Position numbers and translations under genes: made by a program. The notes beneath the pieces are model-generated. The model was not told the DNA's origin. It saw only the letters and a list, made by a program, of their open reading frames with translations, and did not search any database. A stretch of 63,552 nt of DNA, counting the filler, from Ministeria vibrans ATCC 50519 (taxonomy: Eukaryota > Protista > Filasterea), in the NCBI GenBank assembly GCA_943704425.1. It is 5 parts of 5 records of this genome, joined end to end, with 100 filler letters (N's around TTAATTAATTAA, not from the genome) between each part and the next. Parts side by side here need not be neighbours in the genome. Positions count along the whole stretch, not along the records: positions 1 to 7,252 come from CALSCP010000073.1; 4 more parts are not named here. The stretch is one strand, 5' to 3'. Numbering within the stretch: position 1 is the stretch's first letter; each line of letters starts with the position of its first letter. Below are positions 1 to 8,111 of this stretch, piece after piece.

Positions 1-210
1 TCTCACTATTCACAAATCTTACCCGCTAAGACAATGCAAAGAAGAACACAAGAGTCCAAAACACAGTCCAAATCAGTCACTCACGATTTCTCACTATTCA
101 CAAATCTTACTCCCTAAGACAATGCAAAGAAGAACACAAGAGTCCAAAACACAGTCCAAATCAGTCACTCACTCATTCGAACTATTCACAAAACGTACCC
201 CCTAAGACCA
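1..210 (-). repeat. ~88-bp tandem intron repeat with a variable 3-nt core (micro-exon array B)
   Basis: Unit on the + strand is CTATTCACAAATCTTAC-nnn-CTAAGACAATGCAAAGAAGAACACAAGAGTCCAAAACACAGTCCAAATCAGTCAC. It shares motifs with the 80-bp repeat at 4650-7252. Confidence 0.85.
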
Positions 211-883
211 TGGCCCAGAGCAGCGAATCAATACAAACGCGTGTCAGGTATACACTCACACAGCCGATATATCAAAATAGAAAATCTTACAGTCTACAAA
301 GTGGTCAGGCCATCAGAGAATTTCAAACGAGCATATGTTCTCTTACAAACTGCAAAACACAGAGCGCCACCCATTCAGGAGCAAGAAAAACAAGTTAGAA
401 CCGATCAGTATCCTTTGTCAAGCAAATCACGAACCTTCTACAGACAAGTTTATTGTTTTAGTCATTGTCGACCAAACCGACTTTTCGTCTTACTTGCACA
501 GAGATTGTCGAGAGACGGCGAGAATCCCTCATTCCCCCTGTACGTAATCTCCTCCAGGTGCCCACGCAAATCTAAAATAGCTGTTGGGAGCGTCTTGAGC
601 TTGCAATTCCCAACGTCCAGAAGCTTCGTCCAGAAAAAGAAAAAAAAAACGAGCCAACTCGTGAGAAATCCTGGCCTTTCTCTCCCCCTTCCCATACCTT
701 GAGCTTCTTGAACTGTCCAATCCAGCCGGGAATGACCCTAAGCGGGTTGTCTGTCAGCAGCAATTCCTGTAGAGTGTCAGCAAGAACAAGAATTTCGTCT
801 GGGAGAGAAGTGAGCCCCATCTTCCTCAGGTTCAAGGAATGGGACGTCTGCGCGGCTTGAATGCATTCCTGTAGTGAAGACAT
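1..883 (-). CDS. 5' part of an LRR-containing gene (gene B, probable Roco-caspase paralog) running into a 3-nt micro-exon array; truncated by the window start
   Basis: ATG at 883. Exon 883-698 (MSSLQECIQAAQTSHSLNLRKMGLTSLPDEILVLADTLQELLLTDNPLRVIPGWIGQFKKLK) and exon 623-494 (LLDVGNCKLKTLPTAILDLRGHLEEITYRGNEGFSPSLDNLCA+A) carry LxxLxLxxNxLxxLP LRR motifs. The second exon ends in phase 1 at GTAAG. AG/3-nt/GT micro-exons follow at 437-435 AAG, 349-347 TTT, 293-291 ACT, 201-199 GGG, 113-111 GGA and 25-23 CGG. Confidence 0.8.
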
Positions 884-1292
884 GCTTTGGCGACAAAGAA
901 ACAGATAAAGATTGGTGTTAATCTGACTGTTTTCTTTTGAAAAGGGTCGTTTTTGTTCGATCAACCTGGCTGAACCTCCTCCTAGCCAAGAAAATTCGGG
1001 AGAACGTCTGGGCTCAACATCAACACCGCAGAGTGTGCGTTGGTGGCCGCAACCCCCTGAGACCACTGAAGGGCTAAAGGAGTCACTACAAGAGTTGCGA
1101 CGGTCATCGCAGAAAGTAAACGGAAAAAAAATTGTTCCTGGGATAAATCAAAAATAATTATTAATGTGCAGGTATCAATATGAATGTACTATAAAAATAG
1201 GGTCGAGCTCTTCTCTCTTCTCCTCACACTGTTACTCACCCACTCTCTTCCTCTATGCCTCTCTCCATGTTTCATCTCTCGGTCTCTCTCTG

Positions 1293-4200
1293 TCACTTCC
1301 CGTCCCGAAACAACAGAATGTCTCCGTCGTTGCGAGTACCCAGCCACTCGTCCCAAATGCGCCCCACCACCATCGCCTGGTACGTGTGCGCCGTGTCCAT
1401 CTCCCGCAGTCTCTGTCGCAGTCCCACCGCAGTGATGTGCTCTTCTCCCGTGCGAAACGCACTCAGTGTCGTCGGTCCCAGTGCGCGCAGAAGCAGCTCA
1501 GTCAGACGAGTGTACTTGGACGTCTTCACCACAGTCCCATCTGCTTTGGTCCAATTCACTTGCTCCTGCGACATGAAACTGCTCGTGTCCGCCAGTGAGC
1601 TCGCCAGCAGCTGACGCGAGTACCCGTGTTGCGCATCTGTGCTCGAGAACGATAGGTCGTCCTCTGCCTTGAGCAGTGCACCAGACCAGCAGAAGTCGCA
1701 CACGACCAGAATGTTGCAGCCGGGCCATTGCACAGTCGCCGTCAAAAGGCCTTTCAGTGCGTCGAGATTGAATCGCGAAAACGGACTGAAGGTGTTGGGG
1801 GCGAACACAGTCCGCTCTGCATCACTGAGCAACAGACCGCCCTGACTGTCCTCCGCCCCATGGCCCAGCAAGTGCACAATCAGCAGTGCGTCTCGTCCCA
1901 CTCCGTCTCCCACATCTCCTATCAAACGACGTGCCGCTGCCGCAATCTCCACCGCAGTCACCCGGTCTCCAGCCTGAGTGTCCGTCACACTCTGCACTTT
2001 AAACCCGCGTCCCTTCCACAGACTCTCCAGTGCACTCACACTCCGACGCACTCCAGGTAAGTCAGCAAACGCCGCCAAGTGAGGGTTACTTGTCGATTCG
2101 TACCGACTCACACCCACAATCAGTGACGCTGCATGGACATACCGCCGCGACATAGGGCCACCTTAAATGAGAGGGAATAGATACTTGAGTCAATGAAAAA
2201 GGATATTTCTGATCTTACAGAGTCGCTTGGTCCACCACTCTTCCACTTTCACATTGCACACGCGCGGTTCTTCACTGTGCAGCACCGCAGCCAACGTCCC
2301 TTCTTCACGGTACATCTCCGGCGACGCAGCCACGTCCAAAGGACGGAACAGAGGCAGTGACGGTTTGGACGGATGGGCAGGCACAAGCACAGCCACACCA
2401 CGCCATCCCCACCGAAGACTCTGCGTCCGCTCACACACTCGCGTGCTCACCCGTTGCAACGTCGCCATCACTCGTTCAGCTGGTCCCCCGTCGTCGCACA
2501 CCTCCACACGAATGCATTCCTCACCCACATTCAGACGCAGTCGCACAGGAGCACACCCGTCCATCACAAGTAAGTCTGTGCATCGTTGAGTCGCTCGGAT
2601 CTCGCACACTTTCATCGTCTCCCACCACAGTGCCACCACAACCAGATGGAAAGTCGCCAATGACACGGGAAGCACAGATCGCGTGTCCTCCTCGTCTTTC
2701 ACCACCTGGTACAGCATCACCTGCACAGGAGCGGGTGTCGCTCGCTCAACAAATGGCGCATGTTCAGGCAGCAACATCGGCACGAGCAGACGACTGCCGT
2801 GTCGGAACACAAGACTCAGTCGCTTAAGTGCCGAAAACAGTGCGGGGCCATCGCGCACGTCTGCACCGGCAAGAACTGGCTCGCCCTTTGCTTCACGCGC
2901 TGCTGCAGTCCACACAAGCCACAATGCAACCTCAACAGGGAATCCCTCCTCAGACCGCTCTCGTGACTCGTCCAGCTCGCGAAACAGCTTCAGTGTCTTC
3001 TTGTTGTCCAGTCGCCGTCCTGCCGCCTTCACCAGGTCAAGCATGTCGAGCGCGCGTTCGCTTGTCGCTCGCTCCCACTGTGCCATCACTACCGAGCACA
3101 GCAACTCGACAGCTGCAATCAGTCGTGGCACATCAAACACAATCGTGTCTACCGCGGCGACACCTCGTGCACTCGAGTCCTCGCGGCACACCAGCACATC
3201 CGCTGCTTCCTCCAAGTACGGCACCAGTCCCGTGCGCAGTGCTTGCTCGTCGGGAACCAGCGACCCGACAGTGATGACGGGCGTGGTCTCGCTCAGTACG
3301 ACACTCGGCAGATCACCAACAGACGACAGCAACTCAATGCGGCCCATCCGCGACCACCGACCAACCAGATCCTGCGCACACACATATTCCAGTGGCAGAG
3401 TGCGGCGACGCACCGCAGCATGCATCCCCTCGCTCAGTTCGCGCAGCCCAATGCCCTTGACACTGCCCACTTGGAAGAACGGAGTGCGACCAGACCCAGG
3501 CAGAATCAAGTGGTTGCCCAACACGGGTCCCACAAGACGATCAATCCCTTTCGCGACAGTACGCAGCAGTGATTGTGGTGCGGTGTCATCGGGAAACGTG
3601 TCGACATGAGTGCCCACAATGAGCACACGGAAGTACGACGAGAGCGTCTCGGGCACTTGGTGTGCAATCACATGAGCCCACTTGGACAGGTGCTCGTACT
3701 GTCGCTGTGCCGCTGTGCGATCGTCCATGACAGACAGGTCGAAGACGAGGATGTACGCGGACTCGGACCCCATGAAGAGCGCGGGGAGAGAGTCAAACAT
3801 GGGCTCACCTGAGTGAGTGTAAAATTGAGAAGAGGAAGTACAAAAGGTAAACTCTCACCTGCAAAGTCGAAGGTGTCCAGGTCAACGTGTTGCTCGCTCA
3901 GCTCGCCAATAAGAAGATCTTGAACAGCGCTCATAGTCAGCGCGACGGGAGCGGGAGAGGTGGGGAGCGTGGGTGCATTGGGGACGAATGTCGAAGAGGA
4001 CGCGGCTGTTGTTGGGACTGGTGGGACTGGTGGGGGAGTCACGACAGTAGGGCTCATCAGTGACTCCTCTTCGCCTCCGTCATCGCGTGGGTCTGTGGCA
4101 GTCGCATCTCTTGGAGTGCCGATCATGCTGGCCAGGCGATACTCCTCGAGCGGCACAGCCTCAAAGAAGCCTCCTTCACAGTTGAGGACGAGTCGCACGC

Positions 4201-7200
4201 GCTTCATCCGTGTCGCCACTGAGCGGTCTTTCTCCTCGGGCAATGGTTCTCCCTGTAGAGCTGCAAGCAGTGCTGTCTTGCCTGCCATCACTGCACCCAG
4301 AAATAGCACTTTGAGTGAGTGCGACTCGACTGAGCCGCGGGAGAGGGCCGCCTTGAACGCTGACTGAAAGATTGCATCACTGACAAACAAGGGTAAAGAT
4401 TTGAGTGGAGAGTTGGGTTCCACTTTGCAGATATCTCTTACGGATCTAAAAAAAAATATGTCAGATCAAAAGGTTGACAGCAATGTTAACACCTTTTGTC
4501 ACTGTGTAGAGCGCCTGCAACAGTTCCTGCGTGTGTCGCTTCCAGACCGCACGGTCTGCAATCCCCATGGAAATAAGCGATACAACCTACTCGTCCCACT
4601 TACCAACTAGAACAAAAGTGTCACTAACTCGTTGTCACTATTCACAAATCTTACCAACTAAAACAATGCAAAGAAGAGTTCAAATCACAGTCCAAATCAG
4701 TCACCATCCATTTCCATCTATTCTTCAAACTTACCCCCTAAAACAATGCAAAGAAGAGTCCAAATCACAGTCCAAATCAGTCACCATCCAATTCGATCTA
4801 TTCTTCAAACTTACACGCTAAAACAATGCAAAGAAGAGTCCAAATCACAGTCCAAATCAGTCACCATCCAATTCCATCTATTCTTCAAACTTACTCTCTA
4901 AAACAATGCAAAGAAGAGTCCAAATCACAGTCCAAATCAGTCACCATCCATTTCCATCTATTCTTCAAACTTACCCGCTAAAATAATGCAAAGAAGAGTC
5001 CAAATCACAGTCCAAATCAGTCACCATCCATTTCCATCTATTCTTCAAACTTACTCGCTAAAACAATGCAAAGAAGAGTCCAAATCACAGTCCAAATCAG
5101 TCACCATCCATTTCCATCTATTCTTCAAACTTACCCCCTAAAACAATGCAAAGAAGAGTCCAAATCACAGTCCAAATCAGTCACCATCCATTTCCATCTA
5201 TTCTGCAAACTTACCCGCTAAAATAATGCAAAGAAGAGTCCAAATCACAGTCCAAATCAGTCACCATCCATTTCCATCTATTCTTCAAACTTACGAACTA
5301 AAACAATGCAAAGAAGAGTCCAAATCACAGTCCAAATCAGTCACCATCCATTTCCATCTATTCTTCAAACTTACTCCCTAAAACAATGCAAATCACAGTC
5401 CAAATCAGTCACCATCCATTTCCATCTATTCTTCAAACTTACAGTCTAATAAAACAATGCAAAGAAGAGTCCAAATCACAGTCCAAATCACAGTCCAAAT
5501 CAGTCACCATCCATTTCGATCTATTCTTCAAACTTACACCCTAAAACAATGCAAAGAACAGTCCAAATCACAGTCCAAATCAGTCACCATCCATTTCGAT
5601 CGATTCTTCAAACTTACCCCCTAAAACAATGCAAAGAACAGTGCAAATCACAGTCCAAATCAGTCACCATCCATTTCGATCTATTCTTCAAACTTACACG
5701 CTAAAACAATGCAAAGAAGAGTCCAAATCACAGTCCAAATCAGTCACCATCCATTTCGATCTATTCTTCAAACTTACTCCCTAAAACAATGCAAAGAACA
5801 GTCCAAATCACAGTCCAAATCAGTCACCATCCATTTCGATCTATTCTTCAAACTTACTCCCTAAAACAATGCAAAGAACAGTCCAAATCACAGTCCAAAT
5901 CAGTCACCATCCATTTCGATCTATTCTTCAAACTTACCAGCTAAATCAATGCAAAGAAGAGTCCAAATCACAGTCCAAATCAGTCACCATCCATTTCGAT
6001 CGATTCTTCAAACTTACCAACTAAAATAATGCAAAGAACAGTCCAAATCACAGTCCGAATCAGTCACCATCCATATCCATCTATTCTTCAAACTTACAGT
6101 CTAAAACAATGCAAAGAACAGTCCAAATCACAGTCCAAATCAGTCACCATCCATTTCGATCTATTCTTCAAACTTACCAACTAAAACAATGCAAAGAACA
6201 GTCCAAATCACAGTCCAAATCAGTCACCATCCATTTCGATCTATTCTTCAAACTTACTCCCTAAAACAATGCAAAGAAGAGTCCAAATCACAGTCCAAAT
6301 CAGTCACCATCCATTTCGATCTATTCTTCAAACTTACGAACTAAAACAATGCAAAGAAGAGTGCAAATCACAGTCCAAATCAGTCACCATCCATTTCGAT
6401 CTATTCTTCAAACTTACACCCTAAAACAATGCAAAGAACAGTGCAAATCACAGTCCAAATCAGTCACCATCCATTTCCATCTATTCTTCAAACTTACTCC
6501 CTAAAACAATGCAAAGAAGAGTCCAAATCACAGTCCAAATCAGTCACCATCCATTTCGATCTCTATTCTTCAAACTTACTCCCTAAAACAATGCAAAGAA
6601 CAGTCCAAATCACAGTCCAAATCAGTCACCATCCATTTCCATCTATTCTTCAAACTTACGCCCTAAACCAATGCAAAGAAGAGTCCAAATCACAGTCCAA
6701 ATCAGTCACCATCCATTTCGATCTATTCTTCAAACTTACGAACTAAAACAATGCAAAGAAGAGTGCAAATCACAGTCCAAATCAGTCACCATCCATTTCG
6801 ATCTATTCTTCAAACTTACACCCTAAAACAATGCAAAGAACAGTGCAAATCACAGTCCAAATCAGTCACCATCCATTTCCATCTATTCTTCAAACCTACT
6901 CCCTAAAACAATGCAAATCACAGTCCAAATCAGTCACCATCCATTTCCATCTATTCTTCAAACTTACAGTCTAATAAAACAATGCAAAGAAGAGTCCAAA
7001 TCACAGTCCAAATCAGTCACCATCCATTTCCATCTATTCTTCAAACTTACGGTCTAATAAAACAATGCAAAGAAGAGTCCAAATCACAGTCCAAATCAGT
7101 CACCATCCATTTCCATCTATTCTTCAAACTTACCCGCTAAAATAATGCAAAGAAGAGTCCAAATCACAGTCCAAATCAGTCACCATCCATTTCCATCTAT

Positions 7201-7252
7201 TCTTCAAACTTACCCGCTAAAACAATGCAAAGAAGAGTCCAAATCACAGTCC
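1293..7252 (-). CDS. Roco-type GTPase fused to a C-terminal caspase/metacaspase-like (peptidase C14-like) domain, preceded by a micro-exon array (gene A); 5' end lost in the gap
   Basis: Predicted exons are 34 x 3-nt micro-exons (7216..4604), 4555-4493, a 4-nt exon 4445-4442, 4379-3859, 3808-2219 and 2161-1293. All introns are GT-AG and all frames join. ROC motifs are the P-loop KVLFLGAVMAGKT, G3 DTFDFAG|EPMFDSL, AYILVFDLS and G4 LIVGTHVD, followed by a COR-like region. The C-terminus has ASLIVGVSRY, LIVHLLGHG and LVVCDFCWSG (His-Gly / Asp-x-Cys dyad). Confidence 0.85.
4604..7252 (-). repeat. 80-bp tandem repeat = 77-nt spliceosomal intron + variable 3-nt micro-exon (array A; 34 micro-exons)
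   Basis: Minus-strand unit is GTAAGTTTGAAGAATAGATGGAAATGGATGGTGACTGATTTGGACTGTGATTTGGACTCTTCTTTGCATTGTTTTAG-NNN. It has a canonical donor, a CTGAT branch-like motif, a pyrimidine tract and a TAG acceptor. Only the 3 nt between AG and GT are hypervariable, with 13 distinct triplets. Confidence 0.9.
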
Positions 7253-7352
7253 NNNNNNNNNNNNNNNNNNNNNNNNNNNNNNNNNNNNNNNNNNNNTTAA
7301 TTAATTAANNNNNNNNNNNNNNNNNNNNNNNNNNNNNNNNNNNNNNNNNNNN
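7253..7352. other. Artificial scaffold linker (N44-TTAATTAATTAA-N44)
   Basis: An all-frame stop palindrome between N runs. The same linker recurs at 34923, 56124 and 58301. Confidence 0.95.
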
Positions 7353-7353
7353 G

Positions 7354-7440
7354 CACGCCAAGCGCAAGACTGTCACCTCCATGGACGTCGTCTACGCGCT
7401 CAAGCGTCAGGGCCGCACCCTCTACGGTTTCGGCGGATAA
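7354..7440 (+). CDS. H4: Histone H4, C-terminal fragment (5' part in gap)
   Basis: Translates to HAKRKTVTSMDVVYALKRQGRTLYGFGG*, the near-invariant H4 C-terminus. Confidence 0.97.
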   Translation, partial: HAKRKTVTSMDVVYALKRQGRTLYGFGG

Positions 7441-8111
7441 ATTTCTTTTTATCCGGCCCCGCTGCCCCGTACAACAGCGTCTTCTCGGCGTGCATCCGCG
7501 AGAGACAAACAAACCAAAACCAAAACCAAAAAACTGGTGTTTTTCAACACCACCACATTGTCAAAGAAGGAGAACGAAACGAACTGCGTAATTGATTCTG
7601 TGTGTGTCAGCTGTTGGGAGGGAAATGGGCGTGTACTTTTGGAGTTCATGTCGTGTTGGTAGTGAGTGTCTCTTCTTTCTTCAACCATATATTGCATGGG
7701 TACATGAGCACACATCTCGAAATGACCAGTGTGCCTACCAGTCCACTCCTGAGCGTTCTGTGAGTGTCAGCACGCGTGAGCAGTTTGTGAGGCGGGAGAG
7801 CGTTAGTTGATGAGAGGCAGCGACTTGGTGAGTGGCTCTTGTACTTGCGCGTGTTGGGTGAGCACAGTGACAGCACAGACACATTCTGGCGAAATGATTC
7901 CAGTCTTGGCGTTCTGCCTTCTGTGCGCGTATCAGCACGCGTGTGCAGTTGGGTTTAGAGTGGCAACCGTCGGCTGACGACTGGGCGAGTTTGCGTTTGT
8001 CTTTATATTTTTGTACATTGAAAAAGAATGCGAATAATTCTACTAATTATAAAAGCGTAATCAGTGAGTAATCTCAATCTGTTCAGTTTCAAATTTTCTA
8101 CTCACCTCAAC

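Follow-up and report, generated by a model that had tools for sequence, protein, structure and literature searches.

Tandem arrays of exons no longer than a single codon, separated by near-identical introns, occur in a receptor-like gene family of Ministeria vibrans and are joined one after the other in its RNA. It is probable that these mostly constitutive micro-exons encode a hypervariable linker whose germline diversification proceeds by duplication and by recombination inside the repeated introns. The anatomy of the array, its reading frame, the sequential inclusion of its exons in RNA and its recurrence in at least 11 loci were established. In the window analysed (the whole stretch of 63,552 nucleotides, filler included), positions 1 to 7,252 correspond to CALSCP010000073.1 of M. 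vibrans ATCC 50519 (assembly GCA_943704425.1), and the following features were assigned to them.

4604-7252, minus strand: array A, 34 three-base micro-exons with a tandem, near-identical 77-nt GT-AG intron
Micro-exon first bases of array A, minus strand: 7216, 7136, 7053, 6970, 6902, 6822, 6742, 6662, 6582, 6500, 6420, 6340, 6260, 6180, 6100, 6020, 5940, 5860, 5780, 5700, 5620, 5540, 5445, 5377, 5297, 5217, 5137, 5057, 4977, 4897, 4817, 4737, 4657, 4606
4815-5445, minus strand: nine consecutive micro-exons joined in RNA (run X6, loose end at 4659), ACT GGA TTC CGG GGG CGA CGG AGA CGT
4654-4607 and 4603-4556, minus strand: two unique 48-nt introns at the 3' exit of array A
4493-4555, minus strand: exon E1, 63 nt, entered with two codon-completing bases (phase 1) and left with one base of the next codon (RNA joint 4379/4493 and open frame)
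4442-4445, minus strand: four-base micro-exon ATCC between introns 4492-4446 and 4441-4380 (RNA joint and frame)
3859-4379, minus strand: exon E3, first half of a Roc-like GTPase, with the Walker A motif GAVMAGKT and DFAGE at the exon end (translation)
2219-3808, minus strand: exon E4, remainder of the GTPase (GTHVD motif) and a COR-like region
1293-2161, minus strand: exon E5, caspase-like (Peptidase C14) domain and stop codon 1295-1293
494-883, minus strand: beginning of the following gene of the family, in head-to-tail arrangement, with ATG at 883, LRR exon L1 (883-698), an intron and LRR exon L2 (623-494)
1-437, minus strand: entry of array B, 85-nt intron family, with AAG 437-435, TTT 349-347, ACT 293-291, GGG 201-199, GGA 113-111 and CGG 25-23

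All 34 units of array A follow the pattern AG-NNN-GT(A/G)(A/G)G on the minus strand, at the place and with the triplets described in the first-pass annotation: CGG CGG ACC ACT GGA GGT TTC GGC GGA GGA GGT TTC GGA TTG ACT TTG CTG GGA GGA CGT GGG GGT ACT GGA TTC CGG GGG CGA CGG AGA CGT GGG TTG TTG. As the array is cut at the contig end at 7252, beyond which this gene's own LRR exons lie, 34 is a minimum. The unit measures exactly 80 nt in 26 cases and 51, 68, 82, 83 or 95 nt in the rest, and every length change falls within an intron, as had been proposed. Each 77-nt intron combines a strong 5' site, which reads GTAGG once and GTAAG in all other units, with a branch region and a pyrimidine tract. 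The window contains 37 occurrences of the string YAGNNNGTAAG, whereas 200 shuffles lead to an expectation of 0.16. Tandem Repeats Finder reports a period of 80 nt with 32.7 copies and 91% matches, and the plus strand of the array resembles an 80-bp satellite. The contrast between variable triplets and near-constant introns drawn by the first-pass annotation is reflected in the per-site pairwise difference, which is 0.63 in the triplets and 0.031 in the introns (about 20-fold). A structured, known or small-RNA-hosting RNA within the array intron was rejected after an Rfam search with zero matches up to an E-value of 1 and folding, which gave no extra stability over shuffled sequences (z-scores 0.87 and 0.09).

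The reading frame is fixed by the flanking exons and therefore all array introns are in phase 1, so that each codon consists of the last base of one micro-exon and the first two bases of the next. LRR exon L2 ends in phase 1, and a stop count over the concatenated exons leaves the 1014 codons from E1 to the stop open solely with phase-1 entry. This frame is based on the RNA joint 4379/4493 together with the open downstream exons; among the RNA rows displayed, none spans the junction of the last micro-exon with E1. Reading the triplets themselves as codons (phase 0) is thereby excluded, and the peptide given in the first-pass annotation has to be replaced by one of at least 34 residues that starts with A-D-H-W-R-F and ends with T-W-V-V-D. 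Across the family the array peptide is rich in G, V, A, W and R; 31 of the 64 possible triplets are used in 207 units, with one stop in phase 1 versus many in the third frame. The linker segment encoded by the arrays has neither a Pfam domain nor a known fold assigned to it.

Downstream of array A, exon E1 is conserved in the paralog on contig C173. The joint from 4379 to 4493 is present in RNA runs X1 and X6, where it includes GGAT (plus strand), and is missing from DNA runs X5 and X8; the corresponding ATCC micro-exon is demanded by the frame and has the counterpart ATTC in C173. Exon E3 gives weak P-loop GTPase matches in Pfam (EutP 0.012, Arf 0.073) when the exons are searched singly and the domain is thus split between them, and a JGI homolog bears the name “GTPase SAR1 family protein”. 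Introns 3858-3809 and 2218-2162 are removed in RNA. Exon E4 has no match in Pfam or among PDB sequences and only 4 representatives among 1.8 billion proteins. An AlphaFold model of E4 was built from an alignment of 11 paralog sequences (pLDDT 63), and its top Foldseek matches are the C. tepidum Roco protein, LRRK1, LRRK2 and the Roc-COR tandem (6hlu, 3dpu, 3dpt) with E-values of 2.7e-6 to 4e-4, a probability of about 1 and low TM-scores; small-GTPase folds are also among the matches. The model points with moderate confidence to a COR domain directly after the Roc-like region. Motifs of the Walker A, DxxG and THxD type are visible in the translation of this putative Roc domain. The translation of E5 matches PF00656 (E 1.6e-5, 25.1 bits, cutoff 21.4) and contains the His motif LLGHG (GHG) and the Cys motif DFCWSG, so that it has both the Peptidase C14 profile and the His/Cys dyad of a predicted protease. 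A look-up of the exact ORF returned no match.

The next gene of the family follows head to tail, with zero RNA depth at 955-1113 between the two. Its exons L1 and L2 give weak LRR_8/LRR_1 matches, and RNA runs X1 and X6 both have loose ends at 626 that indicate the joint between these exons. The entry of its array B, which is cut by the contig end at position 1, is homologous to that of paralog C2647, whose micro-exons are joined to the LRR exon in RNA.

The RNA evidence comes from assembled contigs of public runs, displayed with 30 letters per loose end, in which rare variants are dropped and quantities are invisible. The splice joints are found only in RNA runs X1 and X6 and are absent from DNA runs X5 and X8. 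In array A, an X6 contig matches the concatenated triplets from unit index 22 onwards exactly over 26 nt and in register; the same contig retains the intron preceding ACT, the first of its nine triplets. In C2647, a run of at least eight consecutive micro-exons (AAG TTT ATT GGT TTG AGG GGG TTG) follows directly on the LRR exon in RNA, and a further six consecutive micro-exons are joined elsewhere in this locus. The 3-nt exons are thus flanked by true GT-AG introns, and the concatenated triplets contradict a removal of the whole array as a single intron. The first-pass annotation had gone further and predicted that subsets of triplets are included combinatorially. Its exons are real, whereas the choice among subsets found no support at the level of contigs, where rare isoforms are invisible: in three stretches from two loci, every contig reaching an array carries neighbouring triplets in genomic order with zero skips, and the dominant RNA form has one fixed set, an outcome that the first-pass annotation had itself listed as counting against its idea.

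At least 11 loci of the 29.7-Mb genome show the same organization, in every case preceded by a conserved LRR module of two exons, and each of the 11 loci with this module continues into an array or an assembly gap. Genome-wide, the pattern of three successive units has 114 matches versus 0 in a reversed control, and the intron core has 187 copies versus 1. What follows the array is either the Roc-COR-caspase body or a coiled coil with a protein kinase; contigs C1260, C1049 and C312 each carry a whole gene in which the array lies between the N-terminal LRR module and Roc-COR-caspase, in line with the architecture initially proposed. The arrays contain 13 to 43 or more units and belong to two intron families, the 77-nt type of array A and the 85-nt type of array B. 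The array entry K-V-[YF]-W and the exit V-V-D are conserved across the family and the LRR exons are 79-93% identical, while the array interior is unalignable and variable in length. Within arrays, exact repeats of 147-214 nt and repeated blocks of 3-5 triplets are found. Identical introns occur in different loci and are better conserved than the exons, and 87-90% of the pairs of 100%-identical introns differ in their flanking triplets. Different loci share no identical sequence of at least 100 nt, and recent exchange of blocks between loci is therefore unsupported. Since arrays break or gap the assembly, the number and order of units may be imperfect outside the RNA-checked stretch.

Sequence of this genome is also present in metagenome runs from algal cultures, macroalgae and seawater. 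Two pattern scans of JGI metagenomes for homologous arrays returned none, or two single chance matches. Relatives of the Roc exons in ENA metagenomes have WD40 exons and no array, and one ENA contig, 685 bp long, retains the LRR exons together with the first micro-exon and then ends.

Several other explanations were weighed against germline diversification of constitutive exons. The satellite appearance of the plus strand and the breaks that arrays cause in the assembly would fit a non-coding array, either a satellite inside one long intron or an assembly artefact, but this has hardly any probability given the predicted triplets found in register in RNA and the very high k-mer depth of the unit in independent DNA runs. 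An introner-like spread, in which a mobile intron was copied between successive codons of an ancestral exon, would account for identical introns at different loci that are better conserved than the exons. It is very improbable, as dozens of independent insertions would hardly all keep an exact 3-nt spacing and the block duplications include triplets; the detected copies are moreover all confined to the arrays of one gene family, with no solo introns elsewhere, and on this ground the array intron was rejected as a dispersed mobile element or introner.

Local block duplications, variable unit numbers and a segment without Pfam domain or known fold also agree with a neutral in-frame minisatellite, in which slippage expands an intron plus codon and is tolerated as one residue per unit in a disordered linker, the variability having no function. 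This appears rather unlikely: a simple recent expansion would not leave triplets so much more different than introns or different triplets beside most identical introns, and triplet use is strongly skewed with stops avoided in the true frame. Further evidence against it comes from an architecture retained across two intron families and at least 11 loci, in which entry and exit codons are conserved and each end carries unique old introns, and from the first micro-exon kept in a related organism. A splicing-based diversifier, in which cells include variable triplet subsets and obtain many receptor isoforms from each locus, is quite unlikely, even though every subset leaves the frame intact, whichever later 3' site a 5' site is paired with, and the splice signals are near identical among units. 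Alternative splicing of mini-exons is reported for the Tuber nank genes as the sole known analogue, and the retained intron beside nine spliced triplets means that splicing is not strictly ordered or complete. Against this stand the adjacent, genomic order of triplets in all array-reaching contigs and one contig that extends 83 nt past the LRR exon unbroken, which is hard to square with the heavy k-mer branching that mixed isoforms would cause in assembly. Short introns of 77 nt also favour pairing of the nearest sites by intron definition.

In the favoured explanation, neighbouring introns would be removed such that every 3-nt exon stays, and the resulting peptide would join the conserved N-terminal LRR module to the Roc-COR GTPase switch and the caspase-like protease as the putative hypervariable part of a receptor-like family. 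Germline diversity would come from duplication, loss and exchange of intron-plus-codon units via misaligned recombination in the near-identical introns, as the repeat structure of this one genome suggests, and any unit-level event would preserve the frame and give rise to a novel codon at the junction. This reading does not depend on subsets of triplets being chosen combinatorially during splicing. A recognition role of the array peptide is conjecture, and the peptide could be a plain spacer. We would give little credence to a more far-reaching proposal in which the near-identical introns are themselves a selected feature, a substrate on which codons are shuffled in frame, both by recombination or conversion of short tracts, acting inside single loci and among the at least 11 of them, and by occasional non-adjacent splice pairing. 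Each new junction would then make a new residue because every codon is split 1+2, and sensors of the LRR-Roc-COR-caspase and LRR-kinase types would carry the array as a programmable hypervariable loop, comparable in a unicellular organism to a CDR3-like region.

Dozens of back-to-back 3-nt exons, apparently included by default, put the minimum size of exons and the closeness of introns to the test. Two spliceosomes cannot form at the same time on either side of a 3-nt exon, and intron removal must therefore be stepwise. As a natural system, the arrays also offer a clean case of introns conserved far more strongly than the coding sequence. Such arrays defeat gene finders, aligners and short-read assemblers alike, and in many protist genomes comparable genes have probably been wrongly annotated or are missing altogether.

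Isolated ultra-short exons are known from the 3-bp exon of Drosophila hth (PMC7392893), from plant micro-exons (PMC8831610) and from a 1-nt exon of Arabidopsis (PMC4674806). They have in common with the present arrays that exons of 1-4 nt can be spliced and are usually missed by annotators and aligners, but they are single, whereas 13 to 43 or more stand back to back here and are apparently all included. Coding minisatellites or repeats of high internal conservation in fungal NLR genes diversify fast and in frame by unequal crossing-over (PMC13449251, PMC9815663). Near-identical repeats in receptor genes and in-frame diversification are shared; the homologous DNA, by contrast, is a coding repeat with few variable positions in fungal NLRs and the introns here, where the coding part is three hypervariable bases. 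The brown-algal LRR-ROCO genes, which combine exon shuffling with alternative splicing and have been proposed as immune receptors (PMC3341825, PMC11378527), likewise belong to a ROCO family with LRRs whose sensor diversity comes from modular exons. Their module is a whole LRR-encoding exon, compared to a single split codon in M. vibrans, where the LRR exons are conserved and the effector is a caspase-like protease or a kinase.

The design of a micro-exon array has previously been reported in truffle only. A literature search found no report of such arrays in a Roco-type gene, in agreement with the first-pass annotation, which had named no Roco-caspase precedent; the truffle case that it cited exists and is the nearest precedent. 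According to PMC9815663, PMC4986451 and PMC13449251, the nank (NACHT-ANK) genes of Tuber melanosporum have dozens of 3-bp mini-exons (Iotti et al. 2012) with reported alternative splicing, still described in 2026 as a lineage-specific mechanism of diversity. Both systems have tens of successive codon-sized exons in the presumed recognition part of an expanded, receptor-like and cell-death-linked family (STAND/NLR-type in Tuber). They differ in that the fungus uses a NACHT switch, whereas a Roc-COR switch or a kinase effector is found here; in position, the arrays lying after the N-terminal LRR in M. vibrans and within the C-terminal ankyrin repeats in Tuber; and in alternative splicing, of which none was seen here in RNA contigs that drop rare forms. 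The NACHT-ankyrin architecture is replaced by LRR, Roc-COR-like and caspase or kinase parts, and the M. vibrans arrays are an analogue, not a homologue, of those in Tuber nank. They would represent a second case in which codon-level modular coding arose, independently of the first, and the presence of such arrays as the variable part of death-domain-type receptor families in both lineages suggests convergence toward evolvable recognition segments.

The three-base units of array A are real micro-exons that are included sequentially and read in phase 1, they recur across a gene family, and they encode a segment with a hypervariable interior. Array A lies on contig C73, taken whole (7252 bp) from an assembly of 29.7 Mb in 2860 contigs. 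The first-pass annotation had described an array of three-base units on the minus strand, an accurate account that lies far beyond chance: 37 copies of YAGNNNGTAAG lie in C73 where shuffled sequence would give 0.16, and TRF returns an 80-nt period with 32.7 copies and 91% matches. Exactly 80 nt are found in 26 units; the length variants (51, 68, 82, 83 and 95 nt) alter the intron alone, so that indels are confined to introns as proposed. Pairwise difference per site is 0.63 in the triplet as opposed to 0.031 in the 77-nt intron. As the array continues past the contig end, 34 units is a minimum. The gene model is as follows.

Features of C73 (E1, E3, E4 and E5 form a gene model with RNA-supported joints)
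4604-7252, minus strand: array A, 34 units with exactly three bases between the intron-terminal AG and the next GTAAG (GTAGG in one unit)
4555-4493, minus strand: exon E1
4445-4442, minus strand: 4-nt micro-exon ATCC, seen in RNA of two runs
4379-3859, minus strand: exon E3
3808-2219, minus strand: exon E4
2161-1293, minus strand: exon E5
623-494, minus strand: second LRR exon of the downstream gene, ending with one codon base

Splicing was assessed in contigs assembled from public sequencing runs. GT-AG joints at 2162-2218 and 3809-3858 are present in X1 (organism A) and X6 (organism B), while X5 and X8 run uninterrupted across both; the former are therefore RNA and the latter DNA. In both RNA runs four additional letters, the micro-exon ATCC, stand between 4379 and 4493, which implies that the spliceosome of this organism copes with exons that small. 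Its counterpart in paralog C173 is ATTC, a conserved feature, and in C1260, C312 and C1049 the same codons are continuous without a 4-nt micro-exon, hence an extra intron has been gained or lost at this site. For array A itself, an X6 contig ending in an array intron continues on the minus strand with TTAG and then ACT GGA TTC CGG GGG CGA CGG AGA CG, a 26-nt exact in-register match (by script) to units 23-31. The retained intron beside these nine spliced triplets is 5446-5537 (minus strand), an atypical 92-nt unit with an additional 12-nt repeat and the 3' end TTATTAG, and it may be spliced more slowly. In a second X6 contig the LRR exon of paralog C2647 is followed by AAG TTT ATT GGT TTG AGG GGG TTG T (a loose end of 83 nt, 30 letters of which were displayed), exactly the micro-exon order of that locus, and a third contig joins six further consecutive C2647 triplets before reaching a stretch where the assembled array has a gap.

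It had been proposed that subsets of triplets are variably included or skipped, generating receptor diversity by splicing. The RNA contigs speak against this for the dominant RNA form: triplets are consecutive and collinear with the genome in array A and C2647, with no insert out of genomic order, and no skipped triplet was seen in the three assembled stretches covering these two loci. Micro-exon subsets may be chosen during splicing at low frequency, although no observation in the present analysis supports such a diversifier.

The exon model yields 1014 open codons only when E1 begins with two codon-completing bases (exons were concatenated by script solely for stop counting, homology searches being run exon by exon). 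Every array intron is therefore in phase 1, each codon consisting of the last base of one micro-exon and the first two of the next, and the earlier phase-0 reading of the triplets is wrong. The resulting peptide of array A starts A-D-H-W-R-F and ends T-W-V-V-D. The LRR exon at 623-494, which stops one base into a codon ahead of its micro-exons (AAG, TTT, ACT, GGG, GGA, CGG), agrees with this frame. Family genes stand head to tail here (883-1293, minus strand), the caspase gene ending near 1158 and the next ATG lying at 883, with zero RNA depth in 955-1113 between them; C2647 (L014 3289-5155) has the same layout.

The name Roco-caspase can be kept with moderate confidence, as E5 has a Peptidase_C14 match above the curated cutoff with visible His and Cys motifs, E3 and E4 together hold a Walker A, a DxxG and a THVD-type motif, and structure comparison points to Roc-COR. 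Pfam gave only weak P-loop matches for E3 and E4 as separate exons, and a set of 1.8 billion proteins contains no more than four representatives of E4. An AlphaFold model of E4 (11-sequence paralog alignment, pLDDT 63) had as top Foldseek matches C. tepidum Roco, LRRK1, LRRK2 and Roc-COR tandem structures (E 2.7e-6 to 4e-4).

The genome search for the periodic pattern gave 114 runs of three consecutive units against 0 in the reversed control and 187 copies of the intron core against 1. There are two intron families, of 77 and 85 nt. The LRR exon is present in 11 copies, each with an array after it or an assembly gap at the expected position. Unit numbers are 13 in C1049 and C312, 15 in C1600, 23-27 in C1260, 20 plus a gap in C2647, 41 in C915 and 43 in C43. 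C1260, C1049 and C312 are contigs that each contain a complete LRR-array-Roc-COR-caspase gene; other combinations also exist.

Other domain combinations
L011 (C915) 4891-7813 and L025 (C2121) 3068-5601: LRR-array module followed by coiled coil and protein kinase, replacing Roc-COR-caspase
Paralogs C2355, C491, C986 (L002, L006, L007) and ENA metagenome relatives L022, L023: Roc-COR-caspase with intron-separated WD40 exons upstream of Roc, without micro-exon array

A near-identical relative of C2355 is present in an ENA metagenome, and a 15-nt coding repeat, (EQQRL)n, directly follows the array in C915 and C43. A related organism keeps both LRR exons and the first micro-exon, where its 685-bp contig ends; at L029 629-645 this micro-exon, AAG, is followed by GC in place of GT, possibly a GC-AG intron. 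N-gaps or contig ends coincide with arrays (L014 7125-7222, L020 7214-7221, L025 5842-6438, L026 6540-6546, both ends of C73), so that they are under-represented in the short-read assembly. The unit has a k-mer depth hundreds of times the single-copy value in the DNA runs, a figure that does not equal copy number.

Between paralogs, the phase-1 ends are conserved (entry K-V-Y/F-W, exit V-V-D) while the interior varies in length and is unalignable, in contrast to identities of 79-93% in LRR exons and 55-88% in E4. Of the 64 possible triplets, 31 occur among the 207 parsed micro-exons. Variability is lowest at the middle base, which takes the third codon position in phase 1 and is hardly ever A. 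G, V, A, W and R are abundant in the peptides, W accounting for about 10%. Many stops occur in the third frame and one in phase 1, where two successive GAT micro-exons in C312 (L015, about 5853-5760, minus strand) create an in-frame TGA, which means that the locus is a pseudogene or that a unit was mis-parsed or is skipped.

Sequence is conserved more strongly in the introns than in the exons, with 171 pairs of 77-nt introns 100% identical, some between loci, and flanking triplets differing in 87-90% of these pairs. Intron divergence is 0.02-0.06 within and between loci alike; in LRR-region DNA, identity between loci reaches only 76-83%. The segment from the branch region to the 3' site is invariant in both intron families across nine loci. 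Within arrays, stretches of 147-214 nt recur exactly and blocks of 3-5 triplets are repeated, and no exact stretch of at least 100 nt is common to different loci. Neither a significant fold nor an Rfam match was found for the array intron. Intron-limited conversion together with selection on codons may account for this conservation, as may selection on the intron as a whole, since nothing else can carry splicing information for a 3-nt exon, or selection for homology as such. We propose that recognition of the short introns would be by intron definition, with stepwise removal, and that diversity would arise mainly in the germline as intron-plus-codon units are duplicated, lost and exchanged. 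A breakpoint anywhere within an intron would keep the frame and create a new junction codon, and in a sensor-switch-effector protein the array segment would be the part that varies.

Both precedents named in the first-pass annotation exist in the literature. In brown-algal ROCO genes entire LRR exons are shuffled (PMC3341825, PMC11378527), and the truffle (Tuber) nank family contains dozens of 3-bp mini-exons (PMC9815663, PMC4986451, PMC13449251), still termed a lineage-specific strategy in 2026. No report of arrays of 3-nt exons was found for algae or for ROCO genes, and the nank family is the sole comparable system in the searchable literature. The arrays described here share its principle but not homology; the differences lie in lineage, in the domains present, in where the array sits in the protein and in what is so far constitutive inclusion.
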